From Hydrolagus colliei (lineage: Eukaryota), in assembly GCA_035084275.1 (NCBI GenBank), contig JAYJKW010000187.1, positions 1-59,523 of the forward strand: a DNA stretch of 59,523 nt, given 5' to 3'. How positions within the stretch are numbered: the first letter of the stretch is position 1; each line of letters begins with the position of its first letter. Below, piece by piece: positions 4,555-59,523 of the stretch. A program made the translations under genes and the position numbers. The notes under the pieces were generated by a model that saw only the letters and a program-made list of their open reading frames with translations, was not told where the DNA came from and searched no databases.

Positions 4555-4583
4555 TCACATCTTAATCGCTGCGTAAGTCACAT
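4555..4583 (-). CDS. Gene 1 last coding exon: DVTYAAIKM-stop, canonical ITIM VTYAAI
   Basis: Acceptor catgtttttccag|AT GTG ACT TAC GCA GCG ATT AAG ATG TGA. Confidence 0.82.
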
Positions 4584-10800: not shown

Positions 10801-13800
10801 CCTTTCACATTGGGAGGACGTCCCAAGGAACCATACCATATCATGGGTAGAGAATAATACACACTCACTCACTCCCCCAGGAATAAGTTTGTGTGTGTGT
10901 GTGCGTGTTGGGGTGAGGTGGGGGTGACTGCAGACAGGCAGTGAGTTTGACGTTGACTATGAACAGAGAAAGCGATGTGGGGAGAAGGTGGAGCCGAATT
11001 CTAGAAGAAAACTGTTGGGATGGAATAATAATAATAATAATCCTTGCATTCCATACAGGGCCTTATCACGTCTTCTCGACGACTCAAAGTGCTTCTCAGG
11101 ATTATAGAGTAAAGTGACTGTATATTTGTGGGTGAAACGCGGCAGCCAATTGCTCACAGCAGCGTCCCCCACAAACAGCTGTGGACTGAGTGACCAAATT
11201 ATTATCGGGATTGTTTTTCTTGAGGGATTATTATCAGGTCAAAGCGTCACAGGAGTCCTGACGGTGTCCTCAGGGGCAAAGTCTAAATTAGAAACTCGCT
11301 CTCTGAATAAACTATCGCCCTGTGTGCGCACACAGACACACACACACATACACACACACATGTATACACACACAAACACACGTACACATACACACATACT
11401 TCCTCTGCCCAAACCTTTAGTTACAATGCCCTAACCCCCTCCGCATATGCCTCACTAACCACCTCCCCACATCTCCCCTCCCCTCCCCCTGGACAGTTAC
11501 TGCCGCAGAATATACGGTAAAGTGAATTGACTGTATACTTGCGTGCGAAAAGCTAGAGCGGGAAACGGAGAGGGGAATTTATTTTTATTTTTGAGTTAAT
11601 TACTGTTTTCAAATTGGGAGTGAAGGGGGAACTTCTTCTCACACAGGAAGTGAGAATGTGGAACTCGCTGCCGGAAACTGATTGAAGCCAAGCCTCAACA
11701 ACAACAACAAAACTAAATTCTATGTGTATAGAGACTTTCACGTCGGGAGGACGTCCCAAGGAGCTGGAGAGTTAGTGTTTCGGACCCGAGCTGGGGTCGG
11801 GGACGGGGAGGGCGGAGGGAAGGGAGGGGAAGTGGCGGTCAAAGAGGAGGATCTTGAGGTGGGACTTGGAGGAGACCAGAGAGAAGTCAACCACAACCAT
11901 CAACAGATTGAAGAGGAACCTTGATTTGAAGCGGAATAGACAGGTGTGGGAGAGGGGAAGATGGTGTGTGAGTGAATGTGAGAGTGGGACTGTGTATGAG
12001 TGAGTATATGTGAATGTGTATGTGTGAGATTGTGCATGTATATCTCTGAATCACTCTCTGGGTGTCAGTCTCTGTGTGTCACTGTGTGGCTGAGGTTGGG
12101 ATTGAACCATATCCAGGCAGTCTCTGACCTGTGTGGAGGACTGGATGACGGTAGTCTCTGTGGTTGCCCTGAAGAGATACAAGGAGCAGAGTGAGGGAGT
12201 GTGTAGATCAGTCACTGCCTGTCCCTGGCCAGGCGCTCAGCCCCCGAACCCAGTTTATGAGATAATAATAACAATACTGTAACAATATTAGCTTCATTTG
12301 ATATGCTTAGTGGTTAGAGCACTCGCCTCGTGAGTGAGAGACCTGGGTTCAATTCCAGGCAGGTCAGGGACAAACCTTGGGCAAGTTTCCTTACTCCACA
12401 TGCTTTATAACAACCCTTAAAAAAATAATAAGACTAGTTATTTCAACCCACGGCTGTTTGTGGGGACGCTGCTGTGCGCAATTGGCTGCCACGTTTCGCC
12501 CACAAAATATACAGTCACTTCACTTGACAGTATATTCTGAGAAGCGCTTTGAGACACAGTCTAGAAGACGTGAAACGCGCGATATCAAATGCAAAGATTA
12601 TTAACAGTCACTACACTGAACAGCAACCAGCCTGTGTCAATCCCTGCTGTAATGGAGCAGTGTCGCTGTTTCGAGACTTCAGCAAAGTCTTTGACAATGG
12701 GGCGCTCTCTCTGTCTCTGTCTCTGCCTCTGCCTCTGCCTCTGCCTCTGTCTCTGCCTCTCCCCAGCGCTTTTCTGGACTGTCAGCCTGGTCTTTAAGCT
12801 CTGAGCAACATCGCACTCGAACTCACAAAATCCTGACTCAGAGGTTCACCCAGCGAGTTGTTGGAATCTGGCATGCGTTGCCTGAGAAGGTGGTGGAGGC
12901 CGATTCGATAAGAGTTTCTAAAAGAGAGGCAGAGGTTGACTCGGCGAGGACGGGTTTGCGCGGTTATAGAGAGAGACACGGGGAACGGGATTAAATTGCT
13001 CTTTTCAAAGAGCCGGCACAGACTCGATGGGCCGAATGGCCTCCTTTTGTGCCGTAAGATTCTATGATCCTGTGAGAGGCGAAAGTGTGAGAGACTGAGC
13101 CAGCCAGAGTGACGCACACCAAATCGATCACTGTTACCACTATTGCTCACCCACCTTTTTTCTTGCAGCACACGATGAGGATGGTGACGAGGAGGACAAG
13201 AAGACACATTGACACGGCAATGGCCACGGGGAAGACGTAACCTGAGGGATCAGACACAAGTTGATCAAGAGTTTCGTGCACGCCATCATTCTCTGTGCTG
13301 GTGCTCACTCCTCCGCTGGAGCTCTCTACTCTAACCGCAGTGTGCGGCTCAGTGGTTAGAGCGCTCGCCTCACAAGCCAGAGACCTGGGTTTGATCCCTG
13401 CCGGGGCAAAACCTTCGGGCAAGTTTCCTTGACAATCCCTCCCAAAATAAGCAATAATAAATCAGTCATTTCAACCCACGGCTGTTTATGGGCTGAAATA
13501 ATATTCATTATGATCAATAATAATCATCATTCCATTAGATTTAGTGCTTTTCACGTCGTCTACACGTCTGAAAGCGCTTCACAGAACATACTGTATATTT
13601 GTGGGTGAAATGGGGCAGCCAATAAGCACAGCAGCGTCCCCCACAAACAGCTGTGCATTGAAATTACCAATTATATTATTGCGTTTTTTTTGATGCATGA
13701 CAATCAGGCATGTGTGTGGAGTGAGGAAACCTGACCAAGGTGTCGTCCCTGCCGGGAATTGAACCTGGGTCTCTTACTTGTAAGGCGCATACTCTAACCA

Positions 13801-16800
13801 CTGAGCTGCAGGACTCCACAAATGTTACATGTCCCACATCCTGTCCATTCCACCATTGGCAGTCCAACCTGGAATTCCATCATGATTCATCTCGATGAGC
13901 ATCACAGATACTCCCACCGTCCCTATCACCTCACCCTCTCACTTGTGTCCTGCAAGACCCATCTCAAGACCTTCCTCTGTGTCTGCACCTCCACTCATCC
14001 CCCCCTCCCTAACCCTTCGACCTCCTCCCCTCTTGACTCCAGCCCCCAGCTCGGATGCAAACTCTTCACTGTCCAATGCATTGGGACGTCCTCCTGACGT
14101 GAAAGGCGCTGTGTAAATGTGACTTGTTGTTGTTGCTGTTGTTTGGGGTCAGGGATGTGTCAGCGAGGGCTCTTACCTGGAACGCTGATCTCAACCTGGA
14201 GTCTGATCTCCCTCTGGATCACCACGAGATCCTTGTTCTCCCGGTCAGCCTCCACTAGACACAGGTAGGTGCCATTGTCCTCTATTACCAGGCTGCTCAC
14301 TGTCAGTGCGATGTTCCCATCAGCCATGCTCCCCCTCAGCTCAAATCGCCCTTTACCCTCCTTCCTAACCCAGGAACCAGCCTCCGGTCTGAAGGTCACC
14401 AGCCGGCTGTAAGGCTCCTTCATCACCCAGATGACATTGCCAGGTTTATACCCTTTGGCATCAGGGGGCAGTGGGCAAGGCAACATCACCGATTCTCCCA
14501 CCGTCCCCATCACCAGACGCTTGTTTGTGTCACCACCTCAGAGAAGAAACACACACAGTCACATACACACAGCCACACACACACACACACAACTCACAAA
14601 GCTATACACAATACACACACTCACATACACATTTATATAGACAGACAGACATACACACACGCATATACAGACACACAGACACGCATACACAGACATACAG
14701 ACACGCTTACATACACATACAAAAACACATACAGACACACACTTACAACATAGAGGCACACACAAAGAATATACACACACAACAACAAAGTTACATTGAT
14801 ATAGCAGCTTTTACTTCGGGCGGATGTCCCAAGGCGCTGGACAGTCAGTGTTTTGGATACAGGCACACACCCAAATGCACAAATCCAAACACACATACGG
14901 ACACACATACAACATACCGAGAAAAATACACAGACTAATAATAATAATATAATCCTTGCATTTGATATAGCGCTTTGTACATCTTATCAACGTCTCAAAG
15001 CGCTTCACAGAATATACTGTAAAGTGAATTGACTTTATATTTGTGGGTGAAACTCGAATTGCGCACAGCAGCATCTTCACAAACAGTCGTGCATTGAAAT
15101 GACCAACTATAATATTGTGTTTTTTTGACGGATGACAATCAGGCATGTGTGTGGAGTAAGGAAACCTGCCCAAGGTGTCGTCCCTGCCGGGAATTGAACC
15201 TGGGTCTCTTACTTGTAAGGCACATACTCTAACCACTGAGCAACAGGACTCCACAAATGTCACATGTCCCACATCCTGTCCATTCTAACATTGGCAGTCC
15301 AACCTGGAATTCCATCCTGATACATCTCAATGAGCATCACAGATACTCCCACCGTCCCTATCACCTCACCCTCTCACTTGTGTCCTGCAAGACCCATCTC
15401 AAGACTTTGGGGACTGACCTATGAGGATAGGTTGAATAAACTAGGGCTGTATTCTCTAGAGTACAGAAGAATTAGGGGGGGATCTTATTGAAAAATATAA
15501 GATTCTTAAAGGGCTGGATAAAGTAGGCACTGAGGGACTGTTTCCCCTGGGAGGAGAATCTATAACCAGGGGTCACCATCTTGAAATGAAGGGTCAGCCT
15601 TTTAGAACAGAGTTGAGGAAACATTTCTTCACTCAGAGGGCAGTGAATTTATGGAATTCACTCCCCCAGAAGGCTGTAGATGTTCAAGGTTGAACATTTT
15701 CAAGGTTGAGACTCACAGATCTTTAGAGAGATTAGGGGATATGGGGATAGGGCAGGTAATCAGAGTTAGGTGAGAAGATCAGCCATGATCTTATTGAATG
15801 GCGGAGCAGGCTGGAAGGGTCGAATGGCCTACTCCTGCTCCTAATTCTTATCTTCTTATGTTCTTCCTCTGTGTCTGCACCTCCACTCATCCCCCCATCC
15901 CCAACCCCTCGACCTCCTCCCCTCTTGACTCCAGCCCCCAGCTCGGATGCAAACTCTTCACTGTCCAATGCATTTGGACGTCCTCCTGACGTGAAAGGCG
16001 CTGTGTAAATGTGACTTGTTGTTGTTGCTGTTGTTTGGGGTCAGGGATGTGTCAGCGAGGGCTCTTACCTGGAACGCTGATCTCAACCTGGAGTCTGATC
16101 TCCCTCTGGATCACCACAAGATCCTTGTTCTCCCGCTCAGCCTCCACTAGACACAGGTAGGTGCCATTGTCCTCTATTACCAGGCTGCTCACTGTCAGTG
16201 CGATGTTCCCATCAGCCATGCTCCCCCTCAGCTCATATCGCCCTTTACCCTCCTTCCTAACCCAGGAACCAGCCTCCGGTCTGAAGGTCACCAGCCGGCT
16301 GTAAGGCTCCTTCATCACCCAGATGACATTGCCAGGTTTATACCCTTTGACATCAGGGGGCAGTGGGCAAGGCAACATCACCGATTCTCCCACCGTCCCC
16401 ATCACCAGACGCTTGTTTGTGTCACCACCTCAGAGAAGAAACACACACAGTCACATACACACAGCCACACACACACACACACAACTCACAAAGCTATACA
16501 CAATACACACACTCACATACACATTTATATAGACAGACAGACATACACACACGCATATACAGACACACAGACACGCATACACAGACATACAGACACGCTT
16601 ACATACACATACAAAAACACATACAGACACACACTTACAACATAGAGGCACACACAAAGAATATACACACACAACAACAAAGTTACATTGATATAGCAGC
16701 TTTTACGTCGGGAGGATGTCCCAAGGCGCTGGACAGTCAGTGTTTTGGATACAGGCACACACCCAAATACACAAATCCAAACACACATACGGACACACAT

Positions 16801-19800
16801 ACAACATACCGAGAAAAATACACAGACTAATAATAATAATATAATCCTTGCATTTGATATAGCGCTTTGTACATCTTATCAACGTCTCAAAGCGCTTCAC
16901 AGAATATACTGTAAAGTGAATTGACTTTATATTTGTGGGTGAAACTCGAATTGCGCACAGCAGCATCTTCACAAACAGTCGTGCATTGAAATGACCAACT
17001 ATAATATTGTGGTTTTTTTGACGGATGACAATCAGGCATGTGTGTGTTGTAAGGAAACCTGCCCAAGGTGTCGTCCCTGCCGGGAATTGAACCTGGGTCT
17101 CTTACTTGTAAGGCACATACTCTAACCACTGAGCTACAGGACTCCACAAATGTCACATGTCCCACATCCTGTCCATTCTAACATTGGCAGTCCAACCTGG
17201 AATTCCATCCTGATACATCTCGATGAGCATCACAGATACTCCCACCGTCCCTATCACCTCACCCTCTCACTTGTGTCCTGCAAGACCCATCTCAAGACTT
17301 TGGGGACTGACCTATGAGGATAGGTTGAATAAACTAGGGCTGTATTCTCTAGAGTACAGAAGAATTAGGGGGGATCTTATTGAAAAATATAAGATTCTTA
17401 AAGGGCTGGATAAAGTAGGCACTGAGGGACTGTTTCCCCTGGGAGGAGAATCTATAACCAGGGGTCACCATCTTGAAATGAAGGGTCAGCCTTTTAGAAC
17501 AGAGTTGAGGAAACATTTCTTCACTCAGAGGGCAGTGAATTTATGGAATTCACTCCCCCAGAAGGCTGTAGATGTTCAAGGTTGAACATTTTCAAGGTTG
17601 AGACTCACAGATCTTTAGAGAGATTAGGGGATATGGGGATAGGGCAGGTAATCAGAGTTAGGTGAGAAGATCAGCCATGATCTTATTGAATGGCGGAGCA
17701 GGCTGGAAGGGTCGAATGGCCTACTCCTGCTCCTAATTCTTATCTTCTTATGTTCTTCCTCTGTGTCTGCACCTCCACTCATCCCCCCATCCCCAACCCC
17801 TCGACCTCCTCCCCTCTTGACTCCAGCCCCCAGCTCGGATGCAAACTCTTCACTGTCCAATGCATTTGGACGTCCTCCTGATGTGAAAGGCGCTGTGTAA
17901 ATGTGACTTGTTGTTGTTGCTGTTGTTTGGGGTCAGGGATGTGTCAGCGAGGGCTCTTACCTGGAACGCTGATCTCAACCTGGAGTCTGATCTCCCTCTG
18001 GATCACCACAAGATCCTTGTTCTCCCGCTCAGCCTCCACTAGACACAGGTAGGTGCCATTGTCCTCTATTACCAGGCTGCTCACTGTCAGTGCGATGTTC
18101 CCATCAGCCATGCTCCCCCTCAGCTCATATCGCCCTTTACCCTCCTTCCTAACCCAGGAACCAGCCTCCAGTCTGAAGGTCCCCAGCCGGCTGTAAGGCT
18201 CCTTCATCACCCACGTGACATTGTCAGGTTTATACCCTTTGATATCAGGGGGCAGTGGGCAAGGAAACATCACCGATTCTCCCACCGTCCCCATCACCAG
18301 ACGCTTGTTTGTGTCACCACCTCAGAGAAGAAACACACACAGTCACATACTCACACACAGCCACACACACACACACACAACTCACAAAGCTATACACAAT
18401 ACACACACTCACATACACATTTATATAGACAGACAGATAGACATACATACACACATATACAGGCACATATACAACATAGAGACACAGTGACAAATATACA
18501 CACAGATATATAGACACGCATACCCAGACACACAGACACGCATACACAGACATACAGACACGCTTACATACACATACACAAACACATACAGACACACACT
18601 TACAACATAGAGGCACACACAAAGAATATACACGCACAACAACAAAATTACATTGATACAGCAGCTTTTACGTCGGGAGGATGTCCCAAGGCGCTGGACA
18701 GTCAGTGTTTTGGATACAGGCACACACCCAAATACACAAATCCAAACACACATACAGACACACACATACAACATACCGAGAAACATACACAGACTAATAA
18801 TAATAATATAATCCTTGCATTTGATATAGCGCTTTGTACATCTTATCAACGTCTCAAAGCGCTTCACAGAATATACTGTAAAGTGAAGTGACTGTATATT
18901 TGTGGGTAAAACTCGAATTGCGCGCAGTAGCGTCTTCACAAACAGCCGTGGATTGAAATTACCAACTGTATTATTGTGTTTTTTTTGATGGATGACAATC
19001 AGGCATGTGTGTGGATTAAGGAAACTTGCCCAAGGTGTCGTCCCTGCCGGGAATTGAACCTGGGTCTCTTACTTGTAAGGCACATACTCTAACCACTGAG
19101 CTTAAGGACTCCACAAATGTCACATGTCCCACATCCTGTCCATTCAACCATTGGCAGTCCAACCTGGAATTCCATCCTGATACATCTCGATGAGCATCAC
19201 AGATACTCCCACCCTCTCTATCACCTCATCCTCTCACTTGTGTCCTGCAAGACCCATCTCACGACATTCCACTATGTCTGCATCTCCACTCAACCCCCCA
19301 TCCCCAACCCCTCGTCCTCCTCCCTCTTGAATCCAGCCCCCAGCTCGGATGCAAACTCTTCACTGTCTAATGTGTCAGGGATGTGTCAGCGAGGGCTCTT
19401 ACCTGGAACGTTGATCTCAACCTGGAGTCTGATCTCCCTCTGGATCACCACGCGTTTCTTCGCCCACTCAGCCTCCACTAGACACAGGTAGGTGCCATTG
19501 TCCTCTATTACCAGGCTGCTCACTGTCAGTGCGATGTTCCCATCAGCCATGCTCCCCCTCAGCTCATATCGCCCTTTACCCTCCTTCCTAACCCAGGAAC
19601 CAGCCTCCGGTCTGAAGGTCCCCAGCCGGCTGTAAGGCTCCTTCATCACCCAGATGACATTGCCAGGTTTATACCCTTTGACATCAGGGGGCAGTGGGCA
19701 AGGCAACATCACCGATTCTCCCACCGTCCCCATCACCAGACGCTTGTTTGTGTCACCACCTCAGAGAAGAAACACACACAGTCACATACTCACACACAGC

Positions 19801-22800
19801 CACACACACACACACACAACTCACAAAGCTATACACAATACACACACTCACACACACATACAAATAGACAATGTGTGTCTATACCAGACATAGAGAGACT
19901 CACATACAATATACAGAGACATACACAGACAGGCAGACAGATAGACAGTCATCATCATTACTTTCTCAGCAGCTGTTCTAATACAGTTTACATCTATCCA
20001 GCACCTTTCAGGATAGGGGGAGGGTGTGGGGGGGAATGTCTTAAGACTTACAGTGTTGACATTGGTGGCTTGGCACCTGAATTAGAGGTAGAGGGAGAAA
20101 TGACGTTCAGAGCAGGCGAAGATGTGTAGTTTGAGATGGGCTTGAGACGGAGGGAATCTGGGACGGACTTCCATAGAGCGGGGGCTGAAAGCTGACTGTC
20201 GAAAGTGGAGAGTAGAGGGTGGGGAGGAAGCAGGCCGGTCCCTGCAGAATGTACCCTGGTATGGCCTGGACACACAGTTCAACTGTATAGAGGTCACTTG
20301 AATAACAATGTCAAACTTTCCCCCAAACTCCTGTGGCTCAGTGATTAGAGCACTTGTCTCGCAAGCTGGGGAGACTAAGCTGGGGAGACCTGTGTTCGAA
20401 TCCAGGCAGGTCAGGGCAAAACCTTGGGCAAGTTTTGTTACTCCACAAGCCTAATAATAATGCCTCCAAAAAAAAACCCACAATAATAAAATAAAATTCC
20501 CTCCAAACTGGAGGGAAGTGAGCAGTGGTGTGCCACAGGGATCAGTTTTGGGACCATTGCTCTTTGTAATCTACATCAATGATCTGGACTTGGGTGTAGG
20601 GAGTACAGTTTCCAAGTTTGCAGATGACACTAAGTTAGGGAGAATAGTAAATAGTGAGGAGGATAGTAGCCATCTGCAAGAGGATATAGACAAATTGCTA
20701 AAGTGGGCAGACACATGGCAGATGAAGTTTAATGCAGAGAAGTGTGAGGTGATGCATTTTGGGAGAAGAAATGAAGGTTGGCAATATAGGCTAGATAGTA
20801 CAATTTTAAATGGTGTGAAGGAACAGAGAGACCTGGGGATTTGTGTTAGTGACTCGTTGAAGGTGGCAGGACAGGTAGACAAGGCTGTTAAGAAGGCATA
20901 TGGGATACTAGGCTTTATAAATAGGGGTATAGAGTACAAAAGTCAGGAAGTGCTGACTAACCTCTATAAGACTTTGGTGAGGCCTCAGCTGGAATACTGT
21001 GTTCAATTCTGGTCACCACACTACAGAAAGGATGTGAAGACATTGGAAAGGGTACAAAGAAGATTTACTAGGATGGTGCCAGGATTGAGGGACTTCAGCT
21101 ATGAGGAGAGGCTAGATAGGCTAGGGTTATTCTCTCATGGAGCAGAGAAGAATGAGGGGAGACCTAATAGAGGTTTATAAGATCATGAGGGGTTTCTACA
21201 GGGCAAATAGAGAAAAACTATTTCCACTCGTGGGCAAATCTGTGACTCGTGGTCACAGATTTAAAATAGTTTCAAAGCGAAGTAGAGGGGAGCTGAGGAG
21301 AAATGTTTTCACTCAGCGAGTTGTTGGAATCTGGAATGCATTGCCTGAAAAGGTGGTGGAGGCTGATTCGATAACAACTTTTAAAAGGGAATTAGATCTT
21401 TATTTAGGGAGAACAGGTCTATTAGGCTATGGGGAGTGGGCAGGGCAGTGGGATTGAATCGCTCTTTTCAAAGAGACGACACAGACTAGATGGGCCGAAT
21501 GGCCTCATTTTGTGCCGTAAAATTCTATGAATCTATGAATCTATAGTCATTTCAATCCACGGCTGTGTGTGGGGAGGCTGCTGTGCGCAATTGGCTGCCG
21601 CGATTCACCCACAAATATATACAGTCACTTCACTTTACAGTATATCCTGTGAAGCGCTTTGGGAAATCGATAAGATGTGAAAATCGCTATATCAAATGCA
21701 AGGATTATTATATTATTATATATATATAAACTCCTGTTCTCTCTCCCTCAATCTCTCCACCCGGCCCCATCCTTCCCCATTTTCAGATCATGCCTCAAGA
21801 CGTTCCTCTTCGACTGTGTTTATGGTCACCTCTATAAATAGAGGCTTAGAGCATAAAATCAAAGAAGTTATGTTGAGTCTTTAGTAATCTCTGGTTGGGC
21901 CTCAGCTGGTGTCAATTCACTTCACAGAATATTCCATGAAATGCTTTGAGAGGCCATGAAAACTCTACATCAAATCATCCTTGCATTTGATACAGTATCA
22001 AATCAGGCCTTTGAGATGTCTCAAAGTGATTCATGTAATATACTGTAAAGTGAATTGACTGTATATTTTGTGGGCGAAACACGGCAGCCAATCACGCAAA
22101 GCCATGCAAGAATGATTAATTCTGGACACCACACTTTAAGAAGGATGTCAGTGATTTGGTGAGGGCGCAGAGGAGATTTACACGAATGACACCAGGGATG
22201 TGGAGAGATTAGAGTAGCTGGGATTATTTAGGGGAGAGCAGAGAAGATTGATGGGAGATTTAACAACAACAACAAAATTACACTTGTATAGCGCCTTTCA
22301 CGTCAGGAGGACGTCCCAAGGTAGTGATAATAATAATTTAATACAGATGCTCAAAATGATGAGCAGTTCTGATCGAGCGAATAGAGAGAAACTCTTTCCT
22401 CTGACGAGTGGGTCAGAAATCAGAGGACACAGATTTAAGGTGATTGTCAAAATAACCAGAGGGGAGATGAGGAGAATTTATTTTACCCTGAGAGTTATTA
22501 CAGTCTGGAATGCACTGCCTGAAATGGTGGAAACCGATTCAATAATAGCTTTTAATAGGGAATTGGATAGGGATTTAAAAAGGAAAAATGTGCAGGGCTA
22601 TGGGGTAAGAGCAGGGTGAGTGAGGACTATTTGGGATAATAAGGGGGGGGTGTGGGACTAGTTGGGGGTAACAATGGGGGAAATGGGACTAATTGGGGCT
22701 AAGAGTGGGGTTTGGGACTAGTTGGGGTAACAGTGGAGGGACTAGTTACTGCTCTTTCAACAGGGTGAGACAGACATCATGGGCTGAATGGCCTCCTTCT

Positions 22801-25705
22801 GTGCTGTAAGATTCTCCGATTGTTTGTGAAACGCCGACCGGGAGCAGGGATTGAGGCAGGATCCAGGTGAGGTTTCAGGAGGGAATTGGGTAAATATCTG
22901 AAGAGAAGCCAATTGTAGGGCATTGGGGAGTGGGCGGGAGGGGTGAGAGGGAGGTTAGTTAATGGATTGTTGTGTCACAGAGAAGCACAGACACAATGGT
23001 CTCACCTGTTACTGACAGCTGGGTGTGGAGGGAATTAAAATTTTGCCCTGGGATCTTAAGCTCCACTCGGTATATATACCTCCCCTGGTCCTGACTGATC
23101 ACAGGGTCTATCATCAGTGTGACGTCGTTATGCCAGGGGTCCCCCAGCAGCCGGTATCGCTCGTCCCCGGGCTTCGGTTCCATTGTCTCACACTTGCCGG
23201 CCTTGCTCTGAGCTGGGCTGTTCCAGCGGCACTCAAACCTGATGACTTTATTGTTATTGATCGTCCACTTGATCGTGATGTCACCTCTGTCATTGGGATT
23301 TGGGTGGGAGAACCAGCAGGACACGATGGCTGACGTCCCGATCTCAGTCTTCACCTCGTCTGGGCCGAGCATTGTCCAACCGGCCAGCTGGTGTACTGTG
23401 TGGGCAGAGACACATTGAAATACTACACACACCGACATACACAGAGAAACACACACCCAATACACAAATATATACACACAATATACACAGAGACACACCC
23501 AATACACACAAACACAGAGACACACCCAACACACAAACACAGAGACACAGGCACCCAACACACACAAACACAGAGACACAACCAACACACACAAACACAG
23601 AGACACGCTCAACACACACAAACACAGAGACACATCCAACACACACAAACACAGAGACACACCCAACACACACAAACACAGAGACACACCCAACACACAC
23701 AAACACAGAGACACACCCAACACACACAAACACAGAGACACAGGCACCCAATACACAAATATATACACACAATATACAGAAACACACACTATACACGCAA
23801 ACATACACAGACATCCCATACATGCAAACACACACACCCAACGCACAATCACAGACACACAACCGACACACAAACACACAGAGACATAGACACTTAACAC
23901 TCAAAAACAGAGATGCAGACACCCAACACACAAACATACCAGACAGGCAACATAGACATAAACATACACAGACACACAAGACACATATAACAACAACAAC
24001 AAAAGTACAGGTGTACAGCACCTCTCGCATCAGGAGGACATCCCAAGGTACTGAGACATAGAGTGATATAGACACATGCAAACATACACGCAGATACGCA
24101 GACACTCAAAGCAAACAAATATACAGACACCAACATATAGGGCAAATAGAGAAAAACTATTTCCACTCGTGGGTGAATCTGTGACTCGTGGTCACAGATT
24201 TAAAATAGTTTCAAGGCGCAGTAGAGGGGAGCTGAGGAGAATTTTTTTCACTCAGCGAGTTGTTGGAATCTGGAATGCATTGCCTGAAAAGGTGGTGGAG
24301 GCTGATTCGATAACAACTTTTAAAAGGGAATTAGATCTTTATTTAGGAAGAACGGGTCTATTAGGCTATGGGGAGCGGGCAGGGCAATGGGATTGAATCG
24401 CTCTTTTCAAAGAGCCGGCACAGACTAGATGGGCCGAATGGCCTCATTTGTGCCGTAAAATTCTATGATTCTATGATTCTATGATTCTATGATATACAGA
24501 GACAGACATGCAACACACAAACAAACATATACAGACACCCAAGACACACACAAACAAACATACACAGACGCCCAACACACAAAAACATACAGAGACCCAT
24601 GCAGAAACATGTCCCCCACACATACAGAAACACAAACGTTCACTGCATTAAAGTCAGGCAATGTCTCATATGCTGCCGTTTGTATAAACTCACAGATTCC
24701 CGCAGAGACAGGAGGGCAGCCAGTCTGGTGGAAACTAATCCAAGGGGTTCAGGGGTTTAAATCGAGAATAAATCCCTCACCCACAGGGAGTGAGTTACAG
24801 GCTGGAGGAGGGCAGAGGGAGCTGTCACATGTAGGGTGAACAAGAAAAGAACAAGGGAGAAGTAGATGGATATTTGGGGAGGACAGGTTTCCAGGGCTAT
24901 GAGGAGAGAGAGAGAGAGAGAGCGGGGAGTGGGATTGATTTGGACAGCTCTTTCCAAAGAGCCGGCAGAGACACGATGGCCAAATGGCTTCCTTCTGTGC
25001 GGTGTAAGTATATGACATGAAAATTCCCGATGTTTGAAGTGGAATCCGCACTCGCTCCCTGGAGGATCCTATTTTACTGAATTCTGGAGAGTATGAGGCA
25101 CAGGTTGGGGACCCCAAGGCTTGGTGACCCCGGAGCTTTGGGGGTAACCGCTGGAATCTAAAACCATCTAAAACCACGCAGCTTGCCATTGACCTCTAAC
25201 TTTCAAGCTTTCTAATTGTCAAGCTAGGATCACCCTGACCATTAGGGCTTTGGCTTGTCGGGTTAACAGGAACTCAGTGGTTTGACTCCCTGCCCCCACT
25301 GACCGTTCTGCCCTTCCAGGTCCTGCCCATGAGCCAGGCTGGGCTGGGCTGTTATCAGCAGTGCTGTGGAGGAGTGTGGACTTGGCTGGCTCAGGAATCG
25401 GCTTAGAGATTGTCACAGAGGGTGAGCTCCCTTGTTAAGCGTCACCTGGGAACCAGCTATAATACATAATTAATAATCATTGCATTTGATATAACGCCTC
25501 AACACATCATTGTGACATCTCAAAGCCCTTCCACCCCACCCCCCGAGGAGGCATTGCTTGATCCCATCTTCCAAGAACGCCTGCCCCTCACTGACCGCTC
25601 GCTCAGAGACCACAGTAGTGTAACAATGGGGAGGGAGTACATACCATAGGCCTGTGCTGTGCCCCACAGGAGGAAGCTGGCAAACCAAACACAGAGAGGC
25701 AGCAT
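4555..25705 (-). CDS. Gene 1: predicted inhibitory Ig-superfamily receptor (SP - Siglec-15-like V - 4x V-set - TM - tail with two tyrosine motifs), 737 aa, 12 coding exons
   Basis: Exons 25705-25645, 23395-23006, 19759-19403, 18320-17961, 16428-16069, 14536-14177, 13241-13155, 12168-12129, 10008-9959, 8359-8282, 7070-7029, 4583-4555 all have AG/GT boundaries. They join in frame (phases 1,1,1,1,1,1,1,2,1,1,1) to 2214 nt with no internal stop. Confidence 0.85.
5330..6480 (-). mobile_element. L2-clade LINE fragment (degenerate RT 3' region)
   Basis: GSVLGWFRSYL.., VRNLGVLFDPE.., ggctttcagcc..ctggaactcc motifs; frameshifted. Confidence 0.75.
6640..6948 (+). mobile_element. CR1 3' fragment
   Basis: [28 protein letters not shown] plus cttatg tail. 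Confidence 0.8.
7029..7070 (-). CDS. Gene 1 exon 11: GDSQVSPIDMDSND
   Basis: Acceptor gttccgtttccag|, donor ATG|gtaaat, 42 nt, phase 1-1. Confidence 0.72.
7330..8280. repeat. C-rich minisatellite (unit about CCCCTGCCCATGTCCCCCCCACCCTCT) in gene 1 intron 10
   Basis: Over 30 degenerate tandem units; source of the Pro- and Gly-rich ORFs. Confidence 0.9.
8282..8359 (-). CDS. Gene 1 exon 10: DTRGDRVTSSDSCQYATILFQHKQGR, ITIM-like CQYATI
   Basis: Acceptor ggctaaacag|, donor GAG|gtgagg, 78 nt, phase 1-1. Confidence 0.75.
8604..8857. other. Assembly gap (254 N) within gene 1 intron 9
   Basis: Run of N. Confidence 1.
8985..9480 (+). mobile_element. CR1 3' fragment
   Basis: [35 protein letters not shown] and typical 3' UTR. 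Confidence 0.8.
9959..10008 (-). CDS. Gene 1 exon 9: cytoplasmic micro-exon RDVVSTSTRLDTMDMMS
   Basis: Acceptor ctctttctcttttattag|, donor CAG|gtacta, 50 nt, phase 2-1 restores frame. Confidence 0.7.
12129..12168 (-). CDS. Gene 1 exon 8: cytoplasmic micro-exon GQPQRLPSSSPPH
   Basis: Strong acceptor ctgctccttgtatctcttcag|, donor CAG|gtcaga, 40 nt, phase 1-2. Confidence 0.7.
13155..13241 (-). CDS. Gene 1 exon 7: uncharged transmembrane segment GYVFPVAIAVSMCLLVLLVTILIVCCKKK
   Basis: Acceptor gtctgatccctcag|, donor AAAG|gtgggt, 87 nt; over 20 hydrophobic residues followed by KKK stop-transfer. Confidence 0.85.
14177..14536 (-). CDS. Gene 1 exon 6: V-set Ig domain A1 (membrane proximal)
   Basis: 360 nt phase 1-1 exon; ORF 14160..14513. 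Confidence 0.88.
15406..15862 (+). mobile_element. CR1 3' fragment in intron between A2 and A1
   Basis: [17 protein letters not shown]-type 3' RT end plus gaatggcctactcctgctcctaattctta tail; duplicated at 17298-17754. Confidence 0.85.
16069..16428 (-). CDS. Gene 1 exon 5: V-set Ig domain A2
   Basis: 360 nt phase 1-1 exon, 1892 bp from A3 and from A1; ORF 16052..16405. Confidence 0.88.
17298..17754 (+). mobile_element. CR1 3' fragment in intron between A3 and A2 (copy of 15406-15862)
   Basis: Same sequence and same insertion point (catctcaagac|...|cttcctctgtgtc). Confidence 0.85.
17961..18320 (-). CDS. Gene 1 exon 4: V-set Ig domain A3
   Basis: 360 nt phase 1-1 exon, open, canonical Cys/Trp/DxGxYxC; ORF 17944..18297. 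Confidence 0.88.
19403..19759 (-). CDS. Gene 1 exon 3: V-set Ig domain A4
   Basis: 357 nt phase 1-1 exon (ttctctgag| ... CCAG|gtaag); [19 protein letters not shown]; FG loop EWAKKR. Confidence 0.9.
20500..21545 (+). mobile_element. 5'-truncated CR1-type LINE (RT C-terminus + 3' UTR) inserted into a SINE
   Basis: ORF 20518..21180 with [23 protein letters not shown]; frameshift near 21137; tail tctatgaatctatgaatcta. Confidence 0.9.
23006..23395 (-). CDS. Gene 1 exon 2: N-terminal Siglec-15-like V-set Ig domain
   Basis: 390 nt phase 1-1 exon (cacacag| ... ACAG|gtgag); [58 protein letters not shown]. Confidence 0.9.
24140..24491 (+). mobile_element. CR1 3' fragment in gene 1 intron 1
   Basis: [29 protein letters not shown] plus (ttctatga)n tail; absent at the mirror site near 44480. 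Confidence 0.85.
25645..25705 (-). CDS. Gene 1 exon 1: signal peptide [20 protein letters not shown]
   Basis: ATG at 25705, hydrophobic leader with small residues near the end (AQA), donor G|GTATGT, phase 1; identical to 41724-41784. Confidence 0.85.
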
Positions 25706-26429
25706 CGTCGGTGACTAACGAGAGTGTCTCCCAACGCTCAACTGAAAATGTCTTCCTCTTTCTCTCCACATTAAGAAATAGGAAGTTCTCCATTCCCCCC
25801 TCAATGAGAGCCACTCACAGCCATGATCACACTGCGCTGAAGGATATTATATCTATTTCTGATCACAGCTGCTGATACATCACCCAGCCAGCCGGCCAGC
25901 CGGCCAGCGAGTGGTGTGTGGGTTTCAAACCACGGTGAAGAAGTTGTTCCCTCAGCCCTTGTTCTGTGTCACTGCCAAAGTCCAAACCCATCTCAGCCTG
26001 AGAGACAACCTTACTGTCAAAGCTAAGATAGCACTGAGTTGTGGATAGTTTTTCAAACCCGGCTTCCATCCAAGCCAATGGATTTGAATGGAACTGTGAA
26101 TCATCCCCAATCTTACGCTTGTGTCCCTTGTTTAAAGTTCCCCAAACTATTCAGAATTATGCTAATAATTAGTTATTGAATTATTTTATGATTTTAAACA
26201 TCTCTATTCGGTTCCCCTTTTAAACCTCTCGTCTCTGGGGAATATATGCCCAACCTATCCAGTCTATTCTGAGAGCAGTCACCAGCCAGCTCTGTTTCCA
26301 TGTGCATGTCACACAGAGACAGCATCTTAATGTACTCCACAACGGACTGGGTGAGAGTCTTAGCTGGGAGTTTGACAGGAATGTTGTCTGTTCCCAAAGC
26401 TTTCCACCTCGCTGAGAGTGAGGAGATAT

Positions 26430-27600
26430 GGATGTCAATCACTCCATCCTCCTACACTGCCTCTCCTCTCAGCTCAGTCTTCATGGACCAGTCCTCGCCT
26501 GGTTTGACTCCTACCTAATCACCATCTCCACTTTGCTGCCACCAATGTCTTCTCCTCTAACCCCCACACTGTCACTTGTAGCATCCCCGATTGGCTCTCT
26601 CCTTGACCCCTACGTTTCAATAGCTACATGTTACCCTTTGGGGATATCATCTGCAAACATGGGGTCGACTACCACATGTACGCGGACGACACCCGACTCT
26701 ATCTTTCTGCCTCTTCCCTCAATTCCAGGACCACTGTTGTCCTGACAGATTGTCTGTGAGACATGAAGTGCTGGATGAGAGCTAACTTTCTACAGTTGAA
26801 TGTCAACAAGACAGACACCCTTCTGACTGGCTCACTCAGCGCCTTCACAGGCACTGGCAGCATCAACCTCTAAGGTTTCACACTCCACCTCACCAAGCCA
26901 GTCAAGAACCTTGGTGTTTTGTTTGATCCTCAACTGACTTTCCTCCCCCACATCCAAGCCATGATCCACACTGCCTTCCTTCACCACTGCAATATTGCCC
27001 GACTCCACTACCACCTCACCCCTCAGGCCACTGAAACCCTCATTCAATTATTCATCATATCCAGGCTCGACTACAGCATCACCCCGCTTGGAGGTTTTCC
27101 CAATTCCTCACTCCACAGGGTTCAGATAATCCAGAAATCTGCAGCCCGTCTCCTCTACCACTCCAAACTTTATGTCCCCAACTCCCCAATTCTCACTTGA
27201 CTCCATTAGCTCCTCGCCATTGCCTGGAGGATTCAATTCAAGATCCTAGTCCTCGCATTCAAGGCAATCCATGACCTCACCCCTACCTCTGTCACTTCCT
27301 AACTAGCTAACAACACTCCTGCCAACTCCGCACAGTAGGCTCCGGCATGCTCCAAGCCCCCCAACCATCGGTGGGCGAGCCTACAGCCTCTCTTTCCATA
27401 ACCTCTGGAATTCCATTCCAAATTCCCTTTTCCATCTTACCCCTCGCTAGCCTCCATCAAGTCCCACCTCTAGACCCTCCTCTTCCACAGTCTCATTGGT
27501 CACCTGAAATCCTCTACTTTCCCACCAACCTCCCCATTCCCGACACCAGCTCAGATCTGAAATATTGACTGTCCAGTGCTTTGGGACGTCCTCCTGACAT
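26430..27600 (+). mobile_element. L2-clade LINE fragment upstream of gene 1 (mirror 39770-40970)
   Basis: ILLHCLSSQLSLHGPVLAWFDSYL..; FDPQLTFLPHI..SRLDY..; degenerate. Confidence 0.75.
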
Positions 27601-30600
27601 GAAAGGTGCTATACAATTGTCATTGAGTTGCTGTTGTTTGTTGTGGCATTTGGAAAGAGATTTCCAGAGGATGGAGGCAGAGAGGATGAAAGCTCACCTG
27701 GTAATGTTGGGATGTATTGAGGGGAGGATCCACGAGGGAAGGGGAAGTATAGTTACTCGAAAGCACTTGACTGGCTATTGAAACTTCCACATTGTGGTCA
27801 ACTGATAAACATTACTGCTTCCTCTTGTCATTCAGCTGCAGGAAGTACTGACATCTTGTGATGCTACAATGTCTTCTGCTCAGATGTTTCAATTCCAAGA
27901 CCATCCCCCCAAACCCCAACATAACTTTCTGTGTCCCAGAGAAAACCAACTGTGGCTGTGGAGCCTGTCCCAGTGACCGCTGCTGTCAGTCGGGGCACCA
28001 CCTCTAATACACAAAAATTACACAGCCTCCACTCAACCCATCTCCTTGAAGAACCTCCACACATTACGTGACACCCCTCTTCTCCCAGGAATTACGGCTA
28101 TGTAAACATAATAGGGGGGTGGTTCTATAGCATAGTGGTTAGGACACTTGACAAGTGAGAGGACCAGGGTTTGATTCCCTTTAGGCAAGTTTCCTTACTC
28201 TACCATTTACAACAACAACAACAAGATTACACTTGAATAGCGACTTTCACACCGAGTGGATGTCCCAAGCTGCCAGACAGTCAATGTTGCAGACACAAGC
28301 TGGGGTCGAGGTCAGGGAGGGTGGAGGGAAAGGAAGTGACTGATGGGACCATCGAAGAGGAAGGTCATGATGCGGGACTTGAAGGAGGCTAGAGAGGGTA
28401 CAAGGTGGAGGGACTGTGGGATGGAATTCCAGAGGTTAAGGGCAGAGTGGCTGAAGGCACACCCGCCGATGGTGGGGCAAGTGGGTCAGGGGACAAGGAG
28501 TAGGCCGAAGCCTGCTGAGTGGAGGGAGCGGGCAGGCTGGGAGGGTGTTAGAAGGTCATAGAGGTAGGGTGGGGCAAGGCTATGGAGGTAGCTTTAGTTG
28601 GCACCATGAAGTTTCCAGTATTACACTCACCCGATGTTCCATTAAACCTGAGGTGCTAGAGCCACAGCGAAAGAAAAATGGCAAGAGTTTCAGACCTAGC
28701 TTCAGTTGACAGGTGAGGTGAAGCCCAGAGGTGAACAAGGTAACTCACAGGGATGGGCCGGCTCCAGGTCAACTTCGGAATAACCAAGGAGATCCCAGCC
28801 AAGCAACAACCGACAGAAATTAGCTTCCTTGTCAAACTTTAATATGATGAACAGTGTGTGAGAAATTCATCCATAAATACAACAAATTGTACCATCACAC
28901 TCACAAAGAGTAGTCAACCCAACCCAACAACTTAACCAACTCAGCTCTGAATTCAATCAACTGAAACAACTCTCAGCCCTGAACCAACTCAACAACTAAA
29001 GCAACTCAGCCCTCAACCAACGTGGACAGCAACTGACTCTCGGCAGATACACAATGCCAGTCGCTAGCAAACTGACTTTGTGACCTGCTTCAAAGCAACC
29101 CTGACAGAAACCAATTCTCAGCCCTGAACAAACTCAACCAAGTATCGATCCTGAACCAAATCAACATTAATCCACCAACATTTCCCCCGTCCTGTCCCCA
29201 TCAAACCTCAGCTTCTGTTCCTAACAACTTCCGGTCTTGACTACAATGTGATCCACAGATTGGTTCATATGTGTTCGGATGTCATAGAATCCAATTCCCT
29301 ACATTGAATCCTCAACGTTAAAACAAACAAAGAGGGGCTGAAATAGCCAAAGAACAGGCAGATCAGATGGTCGTAGAAGAGGAGGGAGGTGAGCAGTTAT
29401 GGCCTGAAATGGTTGAAATCAATATTAAGGCCAGAGGCCTTTTAATGTTGGTACAATTGGCGCAACTCAGCGATGGGTCCCTCATATTACAGGCCCCCAA
29501 AGTAAAGCAAAAAATCATCGAAATGGGAGGATTTGAGTGTGTTGGGCTCGTCTTTTATTAAATACCTGTCCAGCGAACACCAGAGCTCTGCCCAGCCCAG
29601 CCCAGCTAAACCAGAGCTTTCCCCAGCCAGCTAAACCAGAGCTCTCCCCAGCCAGCTAAACCAGAGCTCTCCCAAGTCTGGTGGAGCAGGCTGTCCATCC
29701 GTCTGAAGAGGCATCGCACATGCCGAAAGTAAATTGTTGCATAAAATAACATTTTGAGTAACTTACAAAATAAATCTGCTAATTTGTTAGAAGATATAAC
29801 TTGACTGATAAATAAGCATATAACAATAAGGTCATAACAACAACAAAAAAAAATGGCACTTATGTGGTGCCTTTCATGTTGGGAGGATGTCCCAAAGCGC
29901 TGAACAGTCAGTTCAGGAACAGATCAGTTTCTCCTCATCTCTTCTTAAAACTTCATAATTTTGAACACCTCAATAAAATTCCCCATCAACTTTCTCTGCT
30001 CTAAGGAGAATAATCCCAGTTTCTCTCCACACATTAATAGTCCTTCAACCCTGGTATATTTCAGCGCCTTGGGACGTCCTCCCGACGTGAAAGGCGCTCT
30101 ATAAATGTAAATTGTTGTTGTTGTTGTTGTATAATGCTTGTAAATCTCCGTACCCCCTCCAAGGCACTGATAACCTTCCTAAAATGTGACGGCCAGAATT
30201 AATAATAATAATAATAATCCTTGCTTTTGATATCATGAGCATCTTTGCCCCCACACACTGGAACACTATCCCGCAATCCATCCACCTCTCCCCCTCCCTC
30301 GCCACCTTCAAATCCTGTGTGAAGACTTTCCTCTTCGATCGTGCCTTTGGCCATATTCATACTTGTTGATACTCGATCATGCCATCGTCTATTTCTGAAC
30401 TCCCGGCTTGCTTCCAAAATCCCTCAATCTCCAGCGATCTAGGACATCTTTTTCACATGAGGGCTGTATAGAAGTGTCATTTGTTGTTTCTGTCTTCAAG
30501 ACATCTCAAAGATCTTCACAGAATGCACTGTAAAGAGAATTGACTGTATATCAATATTCTAGCTGAGGCCTAATCAGCTATTTGTAAAGATGCAATATAG

Positions 30601-41300: not shown

Positions 41301-41639
41301 ACAAGCATAAGATTGCGGATGATTCACAGTTCCAGTCAAATCCATTGGCTTGGATGGAAGCCGGGTTTGAAGAACTATCCACAACTCAGTGCTATCTTCG
41401 CTTTGACAGTAAGGTTGTCTCTCAGGCAACCTTATGATGAGAGTTGGACTTTGGCAGTGACACAGAACAAGGGCTGAGGGAACAACTTCTTCACCGTGGT
41501 TTTAAACCCACACACCACTCGCTGGCCGGCTGGCCGGCTGGCTGGGTGATGTATCAGCAGCTGTGATCAGAAAAAGATATAATATTCTTCAGCGCAGTGT
41601 GATCATGGCTGTGAGTGGCTCTCATTGAGGAGGGAATGA

Positions 41640-41723
41640 AGAACTTCCTATTTCTTAATGTGGAGAGAAAGAGGAAGACATTTTCAGTTGAGCGTTGGGA
41701 GACACTCTCGTTAGTCACCGACG
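41640..41723 (+). promoter_or_regulatory. Putative proximal promoter/5' UTR with ETS (GGAA) motifs; mirror at 25706-25790
   Basis: acttcct at 41643 and aaagaggaag near 41668-41677 just upstream of the ATG; no obvious TATA box. Confidence 0.3.
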
Positions 41724-41784
41724 ATGCTGCCTCTCTGTGTTTGGTTTGCCAGCTTCCTCCTGTGGGGCACAGCACAGGCCTATG
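41724..41784 (+). CDS. Gene 2 exon 1: signal peptide
   Basis: ATG CTG CCT CTC ... GCC TAT G|gtatgt; identical to gene 1 exon 1. Confidence 0.85.
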
Positions 41785-55629: not shown

Positions 55630-55935
55630 GGGAGGGAGAGAGTTGGGGGGGGGAGGGAGAGGGTTGGGTGGGGAGGGAGAGGGTTGGGAGGGGGGGGGGA
55701 GAGGGTTGGGAGGGGGGGGGGAGAGGGTTGCGAGGGGAGGGAGAGAGTTGGGAGGGGAGGGAGAGGGTTGCGAGGGGAGGGAGAGAGTTAGCAGGGGAGA
55801 GAGAGAGTTGGGAGGGGAAGGAGAGAGTTGGGAGGGGAGGGAGAGAGTTGGTGGGGGAGGGAGGGGGTTGGGAGGGTAGGGAGAGAGTTAGGAGGGGAGA
55901 GAGAGAGTTGGGAGGCGAGGGAGAGAGTTGGGAGG
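55630..55935. repeat. GA-rich 20 bp minisatellite (GGGAGGGGAGGGAGAGAGTT) attached to an L2 3' fragment; second array at 59060-59355
   Basis: Tandem units seen directly, both abutting gaagaggagggtcttgagaccggccttgaa L2 sequence. Confidence 0.8.
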
Positions 55936-58900: not shown

Positions 58901-59523
58901 CACGACACACAGATAGGAACTGGGTCTGTAGCTTTGCCATAAGGCAGGACAGTCTAGAGTGCGAATGGCCAAAGACTTGCTTGCGCACATACATACACAT
59001 GCGTGAGCACACCAACGACGACAAAATTACATTGGTATAGCGCCTTTCATGTTTCAAGGGAGAGAGATTGGAGGGGTGAGAGTTGGGAGGGTAGGGGTGA
59101 GAGTTGGGAGGGGAGGGAGAGAGTTGGAGGGGAGGGAGAGAGTTGGGAGGGGAGGGAGAGAGTTGGAAGGGGAGGGAGAGAGTTGGGAGGGGAGGGAGAG
59201 AGTTGGGAGGGGAGGGAGAGAGTTGGAAGGGGAGGGAGAGAGTTGGGAGGGGAGGGAGAGAGTTGGGAGGGGAGGGAGAGAGTTGGGAAGGGGAGGGAGA
59301 GCAGTTGGGAGGGGAGGGAGAGAGTTGGGAGGGGAGGGAGAGAGTTGGGAGGGGAGCAGAAGGTACGGTCGAAGAGGAGGGTCTTGAGACCGGCCTTGAA
59401 GAAGGCGAGGGAGGGAGGGAGGGAGGGAGGCGAAGGGACTGTGGGATGGAGTTCCAGACTGTGGGGGCAGAGAGGCTGAAAGCCCAGCCACCGATGGTAG
59501 GGCGGATCACATGCACTCACACA

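Follow-up and report, generated by a model that had tools for sequence, protein, structure and literature searches.

Two genes with a Siglec-15-like V-set exon lie head to head in Hydrolagus colliei

We analysed a 59,523-nucleotide (nt) stretch of DNA from the cartilaginous fish Hydrolagus colliei (contig JAYJKW010000187.1 of assembly GCA_035084275.1), here called the window, in which two genes for putative type I receptors, gene 1 and gene 2, lie head to head and point apart on the arms of an inverted duplication (19164-28588 against 48359-38811). Each gene contains an exon for an immunoglobulin (Ig) V-set domain, V1, which resembles the V domain of Siglec-15, keeps the F-strand arginine of the Siglecs, and has a tyrosine in place of the F-strand cysteine. 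The V1 exon of gene 1 occupies 23006-23395 of the minus strand, between an acceptor (cacag/TA) at 23395 and a donor (ACAG/gtgaga) at 23006, and is of phase 1/1. These splice sites and the phase establish that the interval singled out in an earlier note on this DNA is the exact exon, and all of the motifs that the note had quoted from it are found in the open 130-residue frame obtained by translating the minus strand of 23004-23393. Pfam recognises V1 as a V-set domain (E 6e-7), with a score that exceeds the gathering threshold. V1 contains just three cysteines, C26 in strand B, C55 in strand C' and C68 in the C'-C'' loop; on the minus strand Cys26 is encoded at 23316-23318, Tyr108 by TAC at 23070-23072 and Arg109 by CGA at 23067-23069. 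Judging from the position of the corresponding domain in relatives, V1 is probably the membrane-distal, N-terminal domain of the receptor.

The V1 exon of gene 2 is a paralogous copy with identical splice contexts that differs from that of gene 1 at 13 of 390 nt and 8 of 129 residues, and reads RYMYRVE where gene 1 reads RYIYRVE. Its tyrosine codon is likewise TAC (45638-45640, plus strand) and is followed by CGA for arginine. The two copies are not an artefact of assembly or haplotype duplication, which is ruled out by their surroundings: the arms differ by ~3.5%, in the number of exons for a second kind of V domain (V2), and in their membrane exons.

V1 belongs to the Siglec-15-like family of V domains

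When V1 was compared with the whole of the PDB using phmmer, human Siglec-15 (7zoz_A) came first with an E-value of 4.6e-10, followed by CD33 (9e-6), Siglec-7 (7e-5), Siglec-8 (1e-4) and TIM-3 (0.012), so that the Siglec-15 match stands five orders of magnitude ahead of those to non-Siglec V domains; the identity between V1 and human Siglec-15 is about 29-30%. An AlphaFold2 (AF2) model of V1 built from a 62-sequence alignment has a predicted local distance difference test score (pLDDT) of 84.6, with strand F, including Tyr108 and Arg109, confidently predicted, and its best fold match in the PDB is again 7zoz_A (template modelling scores 0.85/0.88, root-mean-square deviation 1.8 Å), followed by sialoadhesin, CD33 and Siglec-7. 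The earlier note had described V1 as Siglec-15-like and had proposed a profile search and a structure prediction as checks; Siglec-15 ranks first in the sequence search and in the fold comparison. Two further results were not used: a single-sequence AlphaFold model of V1 was poor (pLDDT 58.5) and was set aside, and a search of the PDB with a profile of V1 relatives was dominated by tetrapod Siglec-15, which makes it circular.

We searched 1.84 billion representative proteins exhaustively with HMMER and obtained 109 matches, none more than about 35% identical to V1, from which we extracted 104 homologous V domains for residue counts. A word-indexed protein search with the open frame that contains V1 found no relative at E 0.001. 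Most of the named proteins among the 109 matches are Siglec-15 or Siglec-like by their NCBI names; those from bony vertebrates include lungfish Siglec-15, gar SIG15, golden-mole Siglec-15, salamander proteins automatically named Siglec-12, and a coelacanth protein. Many others are shark, ray and chimaera proteins, mostly called "uncharacterized" and in a few cases automatically named Siglec-15 or Siglec-12, from Hemiscyllium, Mobula, Callorhinchus, Heptranchias, Heterodontus, Mustelus, Chiloscyllium, Narcine, Leucoraja, Rhinoraja, Amblyraja and Hemitrygon. We note that a lungfish protein (P0001, Protopterus, 1128 aa) has seven Siglec-15-like V domains in tandem and a Callorhinchus protein (P0113, 738 aa) has three, and therefore expansion of domain number through exon duplication recurs among the Siglec-15-like relatives.

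A careful maximum-likelihood tree, rooted on second V domains and including few other Siglecs, places the chondrichthyan V1 domains in one clade (support 95/81) with the window pair inside it, as sister (96/77) to a clade of four-cysteine V1 domains of sharks and rays (100/96). The window pair sits at the end of a long branch (0.98 changes per site in this tree and 0.98-1.08 across both trees), and a larger quick tree agrees on the placement (Shimodaira-Hasegawa-like approximate likelihood ratio 93). The backbone among the Siglec-15 groups of bony vertebrates is unresolved, and around the pair the window offers repeats and fragments of reverse transcriptase but no neighbouring genes. Taken together, the sequence match, the predicted fold and the tree provide good support for V1 being a Siglec-15-like V domain, short of strict orthology of its genes to SIGLEC15.

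The F-strand cysteine is lost from both copies of V1

In the crystal structure of human Siglec-15, one disulfide (C64-C142) runs from strand B to strand F and joins the two sheets, and a second (C95-C104) ties the C'-C'' loop (PMC10264397). In our alignment Cys26 of V1 corresponds to C64, Cys55 and Cys68 to C95 and C104, and Tyr108 to C142, so that the C'-C'' pair is kept and the B-F pair is broken by Tyr108 in both copies. The codons bear out what had been noticed at the outset, that the tyrosine codon TAC is a single base from TGC in both genes. The F-strand cysteine is kept in 100 of the 104 related V domains, and an aromatic residue at this position with no replacement cysteine occurs, when the window pair is set against those 104 domains, only in the two window copies.

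CD33-type Siglecs also have an aromatic residue at this F-strand position, since their B-strand cysteine pairs with a cysteine in strand E. Two of our matches (P0048 and P0105) show this CD33-like pattern with an E-strand cysteine. The E-strand column is occupied in V1 by Val91 (NDVTL), and there is no second cysteine in or near strand B, so nothing replaces the lost B-F disulfide, and a CD33-like B-E disulfide in V1 is ruled out. The resemblance to the YFFRME motif of CD33 that had been pointed out for RYIYRVE is therefore real as far as the aromatic residue before the arginine is concerned but is otherwise superficial. The mirror state is found in two Narcine domains (P0070 and P0097), in which the B-strand cysteine has become phenylalanine and the F-strand cysteine is kept; the same disulfide has therefore been lost independently at least twice within this clade.

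The loss does not look like part of a wider erosion of the domain. V1 keeps the consensus residue in 22 of the 27 columns with a conservation of 70% or more across the family, as against 16 of the 80 variable columns, which means that the lineage leading to the window pair was, for all the length of its branch, under purifying selection on the fold and the hallmark positions. Four of the five misses are conservative (L to V, P to S, T to S and S to T) and the fifth is the radical C108Y, so that the loss of the cysteine is a specific exception.

Three residues of a predicted sialic-acid pocket are kept

R143 of human Siglec-15 is the essential contact to sialic acid, to which W44, Y87 and Y154 also contribute (PMC10264397). 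By alignment, Arg109 of V1 corresponds to R143, in keeping with the earlier claim that the F-strand arginine of Siglecs is present, and does so in both copies; Trp6 corresponds to W44 and Phe119 to Y154, and the motif RxRLLGxP is common to V1 and human Siglec-15. With the arginine, the tryptophan and the G-strand aromatic residue all in place, binding of sialic acid by V1 is plausible. As a separate observation, both of the membrane-lysine relatives that we examined have lost the F-strand arginine, P0013 (Rhinoraja) to serine and P0022 (Chiloscyllium) to histidine; relatives with tails bearing an immunoreceptor tyrosine-based inhibitory motif (ITIM) mostly keep it.

The differences between the two copies of V1 are unevenly spread. 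The 13 nt differences count as 11.5 nonsynonymous and 1.5 synonymous, and residues 1-4 and 107-115 account for seven of the eight amino-acid changes (post hoc P about 1e-7); these patches flank W6, R109 and F119 of the predicted pocket. By contrast, nucleotides 13-289 of the exon hold a single, synonymous difference where about 9.7 would be expected at the neutral rate. This clustering fits a binding site that diversifies while the core of the exon is conserved or gene-converted, a pattern familiar from paired receptors, and is also compatible with clusters of mutations in a young pair of pseudogenes.

The two genes differ in V2 number and membrane span

Coordinates of the exons and of the duplicated arms are collected in Table 1. 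The seven Ig exons, both membrane exons and the two tail exons are all open, in phase 1, and bounded by AG and GT sites. Downstream of V1, gene 1 has four V2 exons, all open and of phase 1/1 with the same splice signals (ctctgag/GT...CCAG/gtaaga in copy 1), and gene 2 has one. V2 is a V-set domain (Pfam E about 1e-12) whose best PDB matches, for the gene 2 copy, are TIM-2, pIgR (D4) and CD4 D1; it is also CD300-like, and is not of the C2-set. V2 is 41-43% identical to the V2 domains of Mustelus, Rhinoraja and Heptranchias. A tblastn search with all of the matches, including Siglec-15 proteins that bear C2 domains, found no C2 exon in the window. By definition a Siglec has a single V-set domain and, after it, at least one C2-set domain (PMC7765293), and with no C2-set domain in either gene, neither has the canonical architecture; the description of the locus as Siglec-15-like thus holds for the V domain and not for the whole protein.

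Table 1. Exons of gene 1 and gene 2 and arms of the inverted duplication in the window.
Feature	Position	Strand	Evidence
Gene 1 V1 exon, Siglec-15-like V-set domain	23006..23395	-	Translation, splice sites and phase, Pfam V-set, PDB best match, AF2 model
Gene 1 V2 exon copy 1, TIM/pIgR/CD300-like V-set, canonical B-F cysteines	19403..19759	-	Pfam V-set E 1.5e-12; phase 1/1
Gene 1 V2 exon copy 2 (tandem unit about 1.9 kb)	17961..18320	-	Self-comparison, frame, splice signals
Gene 1 V2 exon copy 3	16069..16428	-	Self-comparison, frame, splice signals
Gene 1 V2 exon copy 4	14177..14536	-	Self-comparison, frame, splice signals
Gene 1 transmembrane exon, uncharged span YVFPVAIAVSMCLLVLLVTILIVCCKKK, phase 1/1	13155..13241	-	tblastn to membrane regions of shark/ray relatives; frame; splice sites
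Gene 1 candidate cytoplasmic exon (..SDSCQYATILFQHKQGR)	8282..8359	-	Weak tblastn matches; frame, acceptor, donor; inferred
Gene 1 candidate terminal exon, (D)VTYAAIKM-stop, canonical ITIM	4555..4583	-	Motif scan; in-phase acceptor tttttccag/AT; inferred
Gene 1 candidate leader exon, low confidence	24556..24610	-	Scan for ATG (24610), hydrophobic stretch and phase-1 donor
Gene 2 V1 exon, paralogous copy (RYMYRVE)	45315..45704	+	tblastn 94.6% identity, identical splice contexts
Gene 2 V2 exon, single	47763..48119	+	Pfam V-set, PDB matches, frame, splice signals
Gene 2 transmembrane exon, lysine in span (..PAAKCLVLL..)	48799..48888	+	67% identity to span of Callorhinchus LOC103174418 (P0009); frame; splice sites
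Gene 2 candidate leader exon, low confidence, same as that of gene 1	44370..44424	+	Same scan; ATG at 44370
Left arm of inverted duplication, 5' half of gene 1	19164..28588		Self-blastn
Right arm of inverted duplication, gene 2	38811..48359		Self-blastn

The candidate cytoplasmic exon of gene 1 (..SDSCQYATIL..) resembles the DSCTYA(S/T)I motifs of relatives, and its candidate terminal exon would place an ITIM where relatives have one at their C-termini (..NVTYAAVV..). With an uncharged span and this putative tail in gene 1 and a lysine in the span of gene 2, the locus is best read, from its exons, as a putative inhibitory/activating receptor pair of a Siglec-15-related family. The candidate leader exons lie in TG-rich DNA with a weak donor, inside a block that is 99% identical between the arms (see below), and are not trusted.

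We also note an extra cysteine in V2 of gene 2 (TVSCLVIED), at a position occupied by serine in all four V2 copies of gene 1. Going by the corresponding LTISSLQPED segment in antibody V domains, this cysteine should be exposed at the surface, and it could mediate a disulfide-linked dimer of the putative activating receptor.

The duplicated arms and the surrounding DNA

Leaving aside the tandem repeats rich in TG/CA just upstream of the V1 exons, mismatches between the two arms amount to 3.5-3.7% of sites, and gaps open at 3.4 per kb. The arms have also diverged in structure: gene 1 has four V2 exons and gene 2 a single one, and their membrane exons are different. The four in-phase V2 exons of gene 1 arise from a unit of ~1.9 kb that is tandemly triplicated or quadruplicated at 13971-19268 (96% identity between units), and the three distal copies have in common an in-frame insertion of 3 nt (EAERENKDLVV). 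About 1.1 kb upstream of each V1 exon lies a 520-bp block (24492-25011 and 43969-44488) that is 99% identical between the arms, with 5 mismatches where ~18 would be expected (P 3e-4). This block, which partly overlaps a repeat resembling a short interspersed element (SINE) and TG-rich DNA, may be either a promoter or leader region that has been conserved or a tract of recent gene conversion.

Directly upstream of the V1 exons are long tandem arrays rich in TG/CA (23400-24100 and 44384-45300, 0.7-0.9 kb each). These run on into the exons as artefactual open frames, 313 and 398 codons in length, and mask the true leader exon. Retrotransposon-derived fragments of reverse transcriptase (Pfam RVT_1, E 3e-13 and 5e-15) are present at 20518-21180 on the plus strand, in an intron of gene 1, and at 42919-43907 on the minus strand, upstream of gene 2, and many SINE-like repeats are scattered across the window. 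Low-complexity arrays rich in G or C at 7110-8291, 55630-56083, 59057-59508 and 60-620 give rise to long false open reading frames rich in proline or in Gly/Arg/Glu, and one such array abuts a gap of Ns (8604-8857) in the tail region of gene 1.

A proposed lectin domain without its inter-sheet disulfide, and the alternatives

The reading that we favour, and to which we give slightly better than even chances, is that V1 is the ligand-binding domain of a type I receptor from a cartilaginous-fish branch of the Siglec-15-like family, that the B-F disulfide has been dispensed with, and that the domain is deployed in a gene pair with an ITIM on one side and a membrane lysine on the other. The canonical disulfide would be gone because the F-strand cysteine became tyrosine before the duplication; the fold of V1 would probably be held by its hydrophobic core and the kept C55-C68 bridge, leaving Cys26 as a buried free thiol. 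If expressed, V1 would recognise a sialylated ligand, with Arg109 of strand F binding the carboxylate and Trp6 of strand A and Phe119 of strand G packing against the sugar. Gene 1 would be the inhibitory type, in which V1 and four V domains resembling those of TIM and pIgR are followed by an uncharged span and a tail with an ITIM (VTYAAI) at its end, and gene 2 the activating type, with V1, a single V2 and a lysine in the span as in Siglec-15, which pairs with DAP12.

Several observations weigh against this reading. The F-strand cysteine that V1 has lost is the most conserved column of the family (98%). The likeness of the V1 model to 7zoz is partly built in, the alignment from which it was made being rich in Siglec-15 orthologues, and we regard the fold match as corroboration and not as independent proof. 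Y87 of human Siglec-15 has no clear equivalent in V1, as read from the alignment, owing to a C-C' loop shorter by two residues. The arginine position varies in 17 of the 104 relatives (to H, S, G, Q, K, L or C), which argues that the family is not uniformly one of lectins. No secure leader exon was found upstream of V1 in a scan for an ATG, a hydrophobic stretch and a phase-1 donor, which was swamped by TG-rich repeats with their many hydrophobic open frames. The V1 exons differ by 3.3% and the first V2 exons by 2.2%, set against 3.5-3.7% in the arms and introns, so that the Ig exons diverge about as much as the introns, and the ratio of nonsynonymous to synonymous differences over V1 and V2, about 18:3, is not different from neutral (P 0.27). 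Intact frames are weakly informative at this divergence, chance alone predicting about 2.6 indels and fewer than one stop; judged by indel counts, by exons against introns, and by the ratio of nonsynonymous to synonymous rates (dN/dS), divergence since the duplication is not distinguishable from neutral drift.

Some of these points would be accommodated if V1 were folded and used but were not a sialic-acid lectin, the arginine being inherited baggage and the pair recognising a ligand without sialic acid, protein or other, in the manner of many paired Ig receptors. Such a receptor could well have an arginine position as variable as that of the relatives, among them members of the same clade, would have no need of the Siglec C2-set domain, in place of which TIM/CD300/pIgR-like V domains have been added, could forgo a contact equivalent to Y87 (contacts from PMC10264397), and might be expected at the end of a protein branch as long as that of the window pair. 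We nevertheless consider this possibility unlikely, as Arg109, Trp6 and the G-strand aromatic residue have all been kept at only about 30% identity to relatives, and as the differences between the paralogues cluster around the predicted pocket.

We think it less likely still that both genes are recent duplicates in decay and that the loss of the cysteine is a symptom of relaxed constraint. Decay would explain why dN/dS between the copies is about 2 in V1 and at least 1 in V2, why exons have diverged as much as introns, why no secure leader exon emerged, why the protein collection holds no product of either gene (no relative at E 0.001, and two exact look-ups with no match), and why no Tyr-bearing orthologue from another species is found among the 109 matches. 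However, 11 exons are free of stops, frameshifts and broken splice sites, and the hallmark columns kept along the long branch indicate that constraint on the lineage persisted until shortly before the duplication, if not longer. In addition, the core of the V1 exon is far more alike between the copies than neutral DNA would be, and at ~3.5% divergence tests of this kind are weak in either direction.

It had also been suggested that the orphan B-strand cysteine may be unpaired or may bridge to another domain or chain. The first part of this suggestion is likely to be right, and we take Cys26 to be, most likely, a buried free thiol. The second part is without support because the residue lies at a core-facing position. 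The interdomain bridge of CD33-type Siglecs is formed by another cysteine, an additional one that lies upstream in strand B. Although the odd number of cysteines in V1 and the odd, probably surface-exposed cysteine of V2 in gene 2 (TVSCL) would suit a bridge of Cys26 to that residue or to a second receptor chain, like the CD33-type interdomain bridge, we hold this to be very improbable, given that Cys26 aligns with human C64 at the canonical core-facing position of strand B (PMC10264397), that V1 has no counterpart of the additional upstream cysteine, and that the four V2 copies of gene 1 have no cysteine to spare.

If, as we favour, the pair is expressed and V1 binds sialic acid, a Siglec-type site would work on an Ig sandwich with no inter-sheet disulfide, and the domain would be a natural model for the origin of the unusual disulfide arrangement of other Siglecs. 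An inhibitory/activating pair of a cartilaginous fish that differs at the predicted pocket would also be the signature of host-pathogen or self/non-self tuning. If instead the genes are decaying, they amount to no more than a recent pair of pseudogenes within a large family of receptors. A more ambitious version, tentative and in our view rather doubtful, is that the pair represents an undescribed, fast-evolving family of paired receptors in cartilaginous fishes that combines a Siglec-15-type lectin with TIM/CD300-like V domains, the lectin working without the Ig disulfide and the domain that has only the B-strand cysteine being a living intermediate between B-F and B-E pairing.

Comparison with known receptors

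Human Siglec-15 (Q6ZMC9; 7ZOZ) matches V1 best both in sequence and in fold and has in common with it the A-strand tryptophan (W44), the C'-C'' disulfide (C95-C104), the RxRLLGxP motif, R143 and a G-strand aromatic residue (Y154); the lysine in its membrane span is shared with gene 2. It differs in that its F-strand C142, the partner of C64, is tyrosine in V1, in having a C-C' loop longer by two residues, in a second domain that is of the C2-set where both window genes have a V-set domain, and, with respect to gene 1, in its charged membrane span as opposed to an ITIM tail. Within the library searched, the literature yielded nothing specific on Siglec-15-like genes in sharks or cartilaginous fish.

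The closest architecture is that of a set of shark and ray receptors from Mustelus asterias (XP_078071345), Heterodontus francisci (XP_067885260), Heptranchias perlo (XP_067838506), Narcine bancroftii (XP_069798607), Rhinoraja longicauda (XP_078252965) and Hemiscyllium ocellatum (XP_060690388, automatically named Siglec-15). Like the window genes, these run from a Siglec-15-like V1 through a TIM/pIgR-like V2 to a membrane span, occur in ITIM-tailed and membrane-lysine forms, and vary in domain number by tandem exon duplication; their V1 domains form the sister clade in our tree. They differ in having a four-cysteine V1 (B, C', C'' and F) in place of the three cysteines of the window V1, with the F-strand cysteine kept in all and the B-strand cysteine lost in Narcine XP_069739668 and XP_069739664. 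V1 and V2 of the window lie on long branches, at 33-42% identity to these proteins, and gene 2 keeps the arginine that the two membrane-lysine relatives have lost. Callorhinchus milii LOC103174418 (XP_042192165; an older cluster record is named Siglec-15) belongs to the same chondrichthyan V1 clade and has a lysine-bearing membrane span 67% identical to the membrane exon of gene 2. However, its order is V-V-C2-membrane span, and its V1 lacks the C'-C'' pair and keeps the B-F pair; two-cysteine relatives in Heptranchias, Mobula, Amblyraja and Narcine group with it.

The CD33-related Siglecs (CD33, Siglec-7 and Siglec-8) make up the second tier of sequence and fold matches and share with V1 the aromatic residue before the essential arginine (YFFRME-type) and with gene 1 the ITIM tails. 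They differ in their re-paired B-E cysteine, interdomain cysteine and C2-set domains, where the window V1 has valine and no extra cysteine. Among paired Siglecs, Siglec-5 and Siglec-14 are encoded by adjacent inhibitory and activating genes whose N-terminal ligand-binding domains are near-identical, with patchy identity that suggests gene conversion. The window genes likewise form a putative inhibitory/activating pair with a near-identical binding domain and patchy identity, although they belong to another lineage, are arranged as an inverted duplication and have no C2 domains; for them gene conversion is only suggested, by the 99% block and the near-invariant core of the V1 exon. Set beside these systems, the V1 pair is an unusual, not a revolutionary, variant of a known receptor family.

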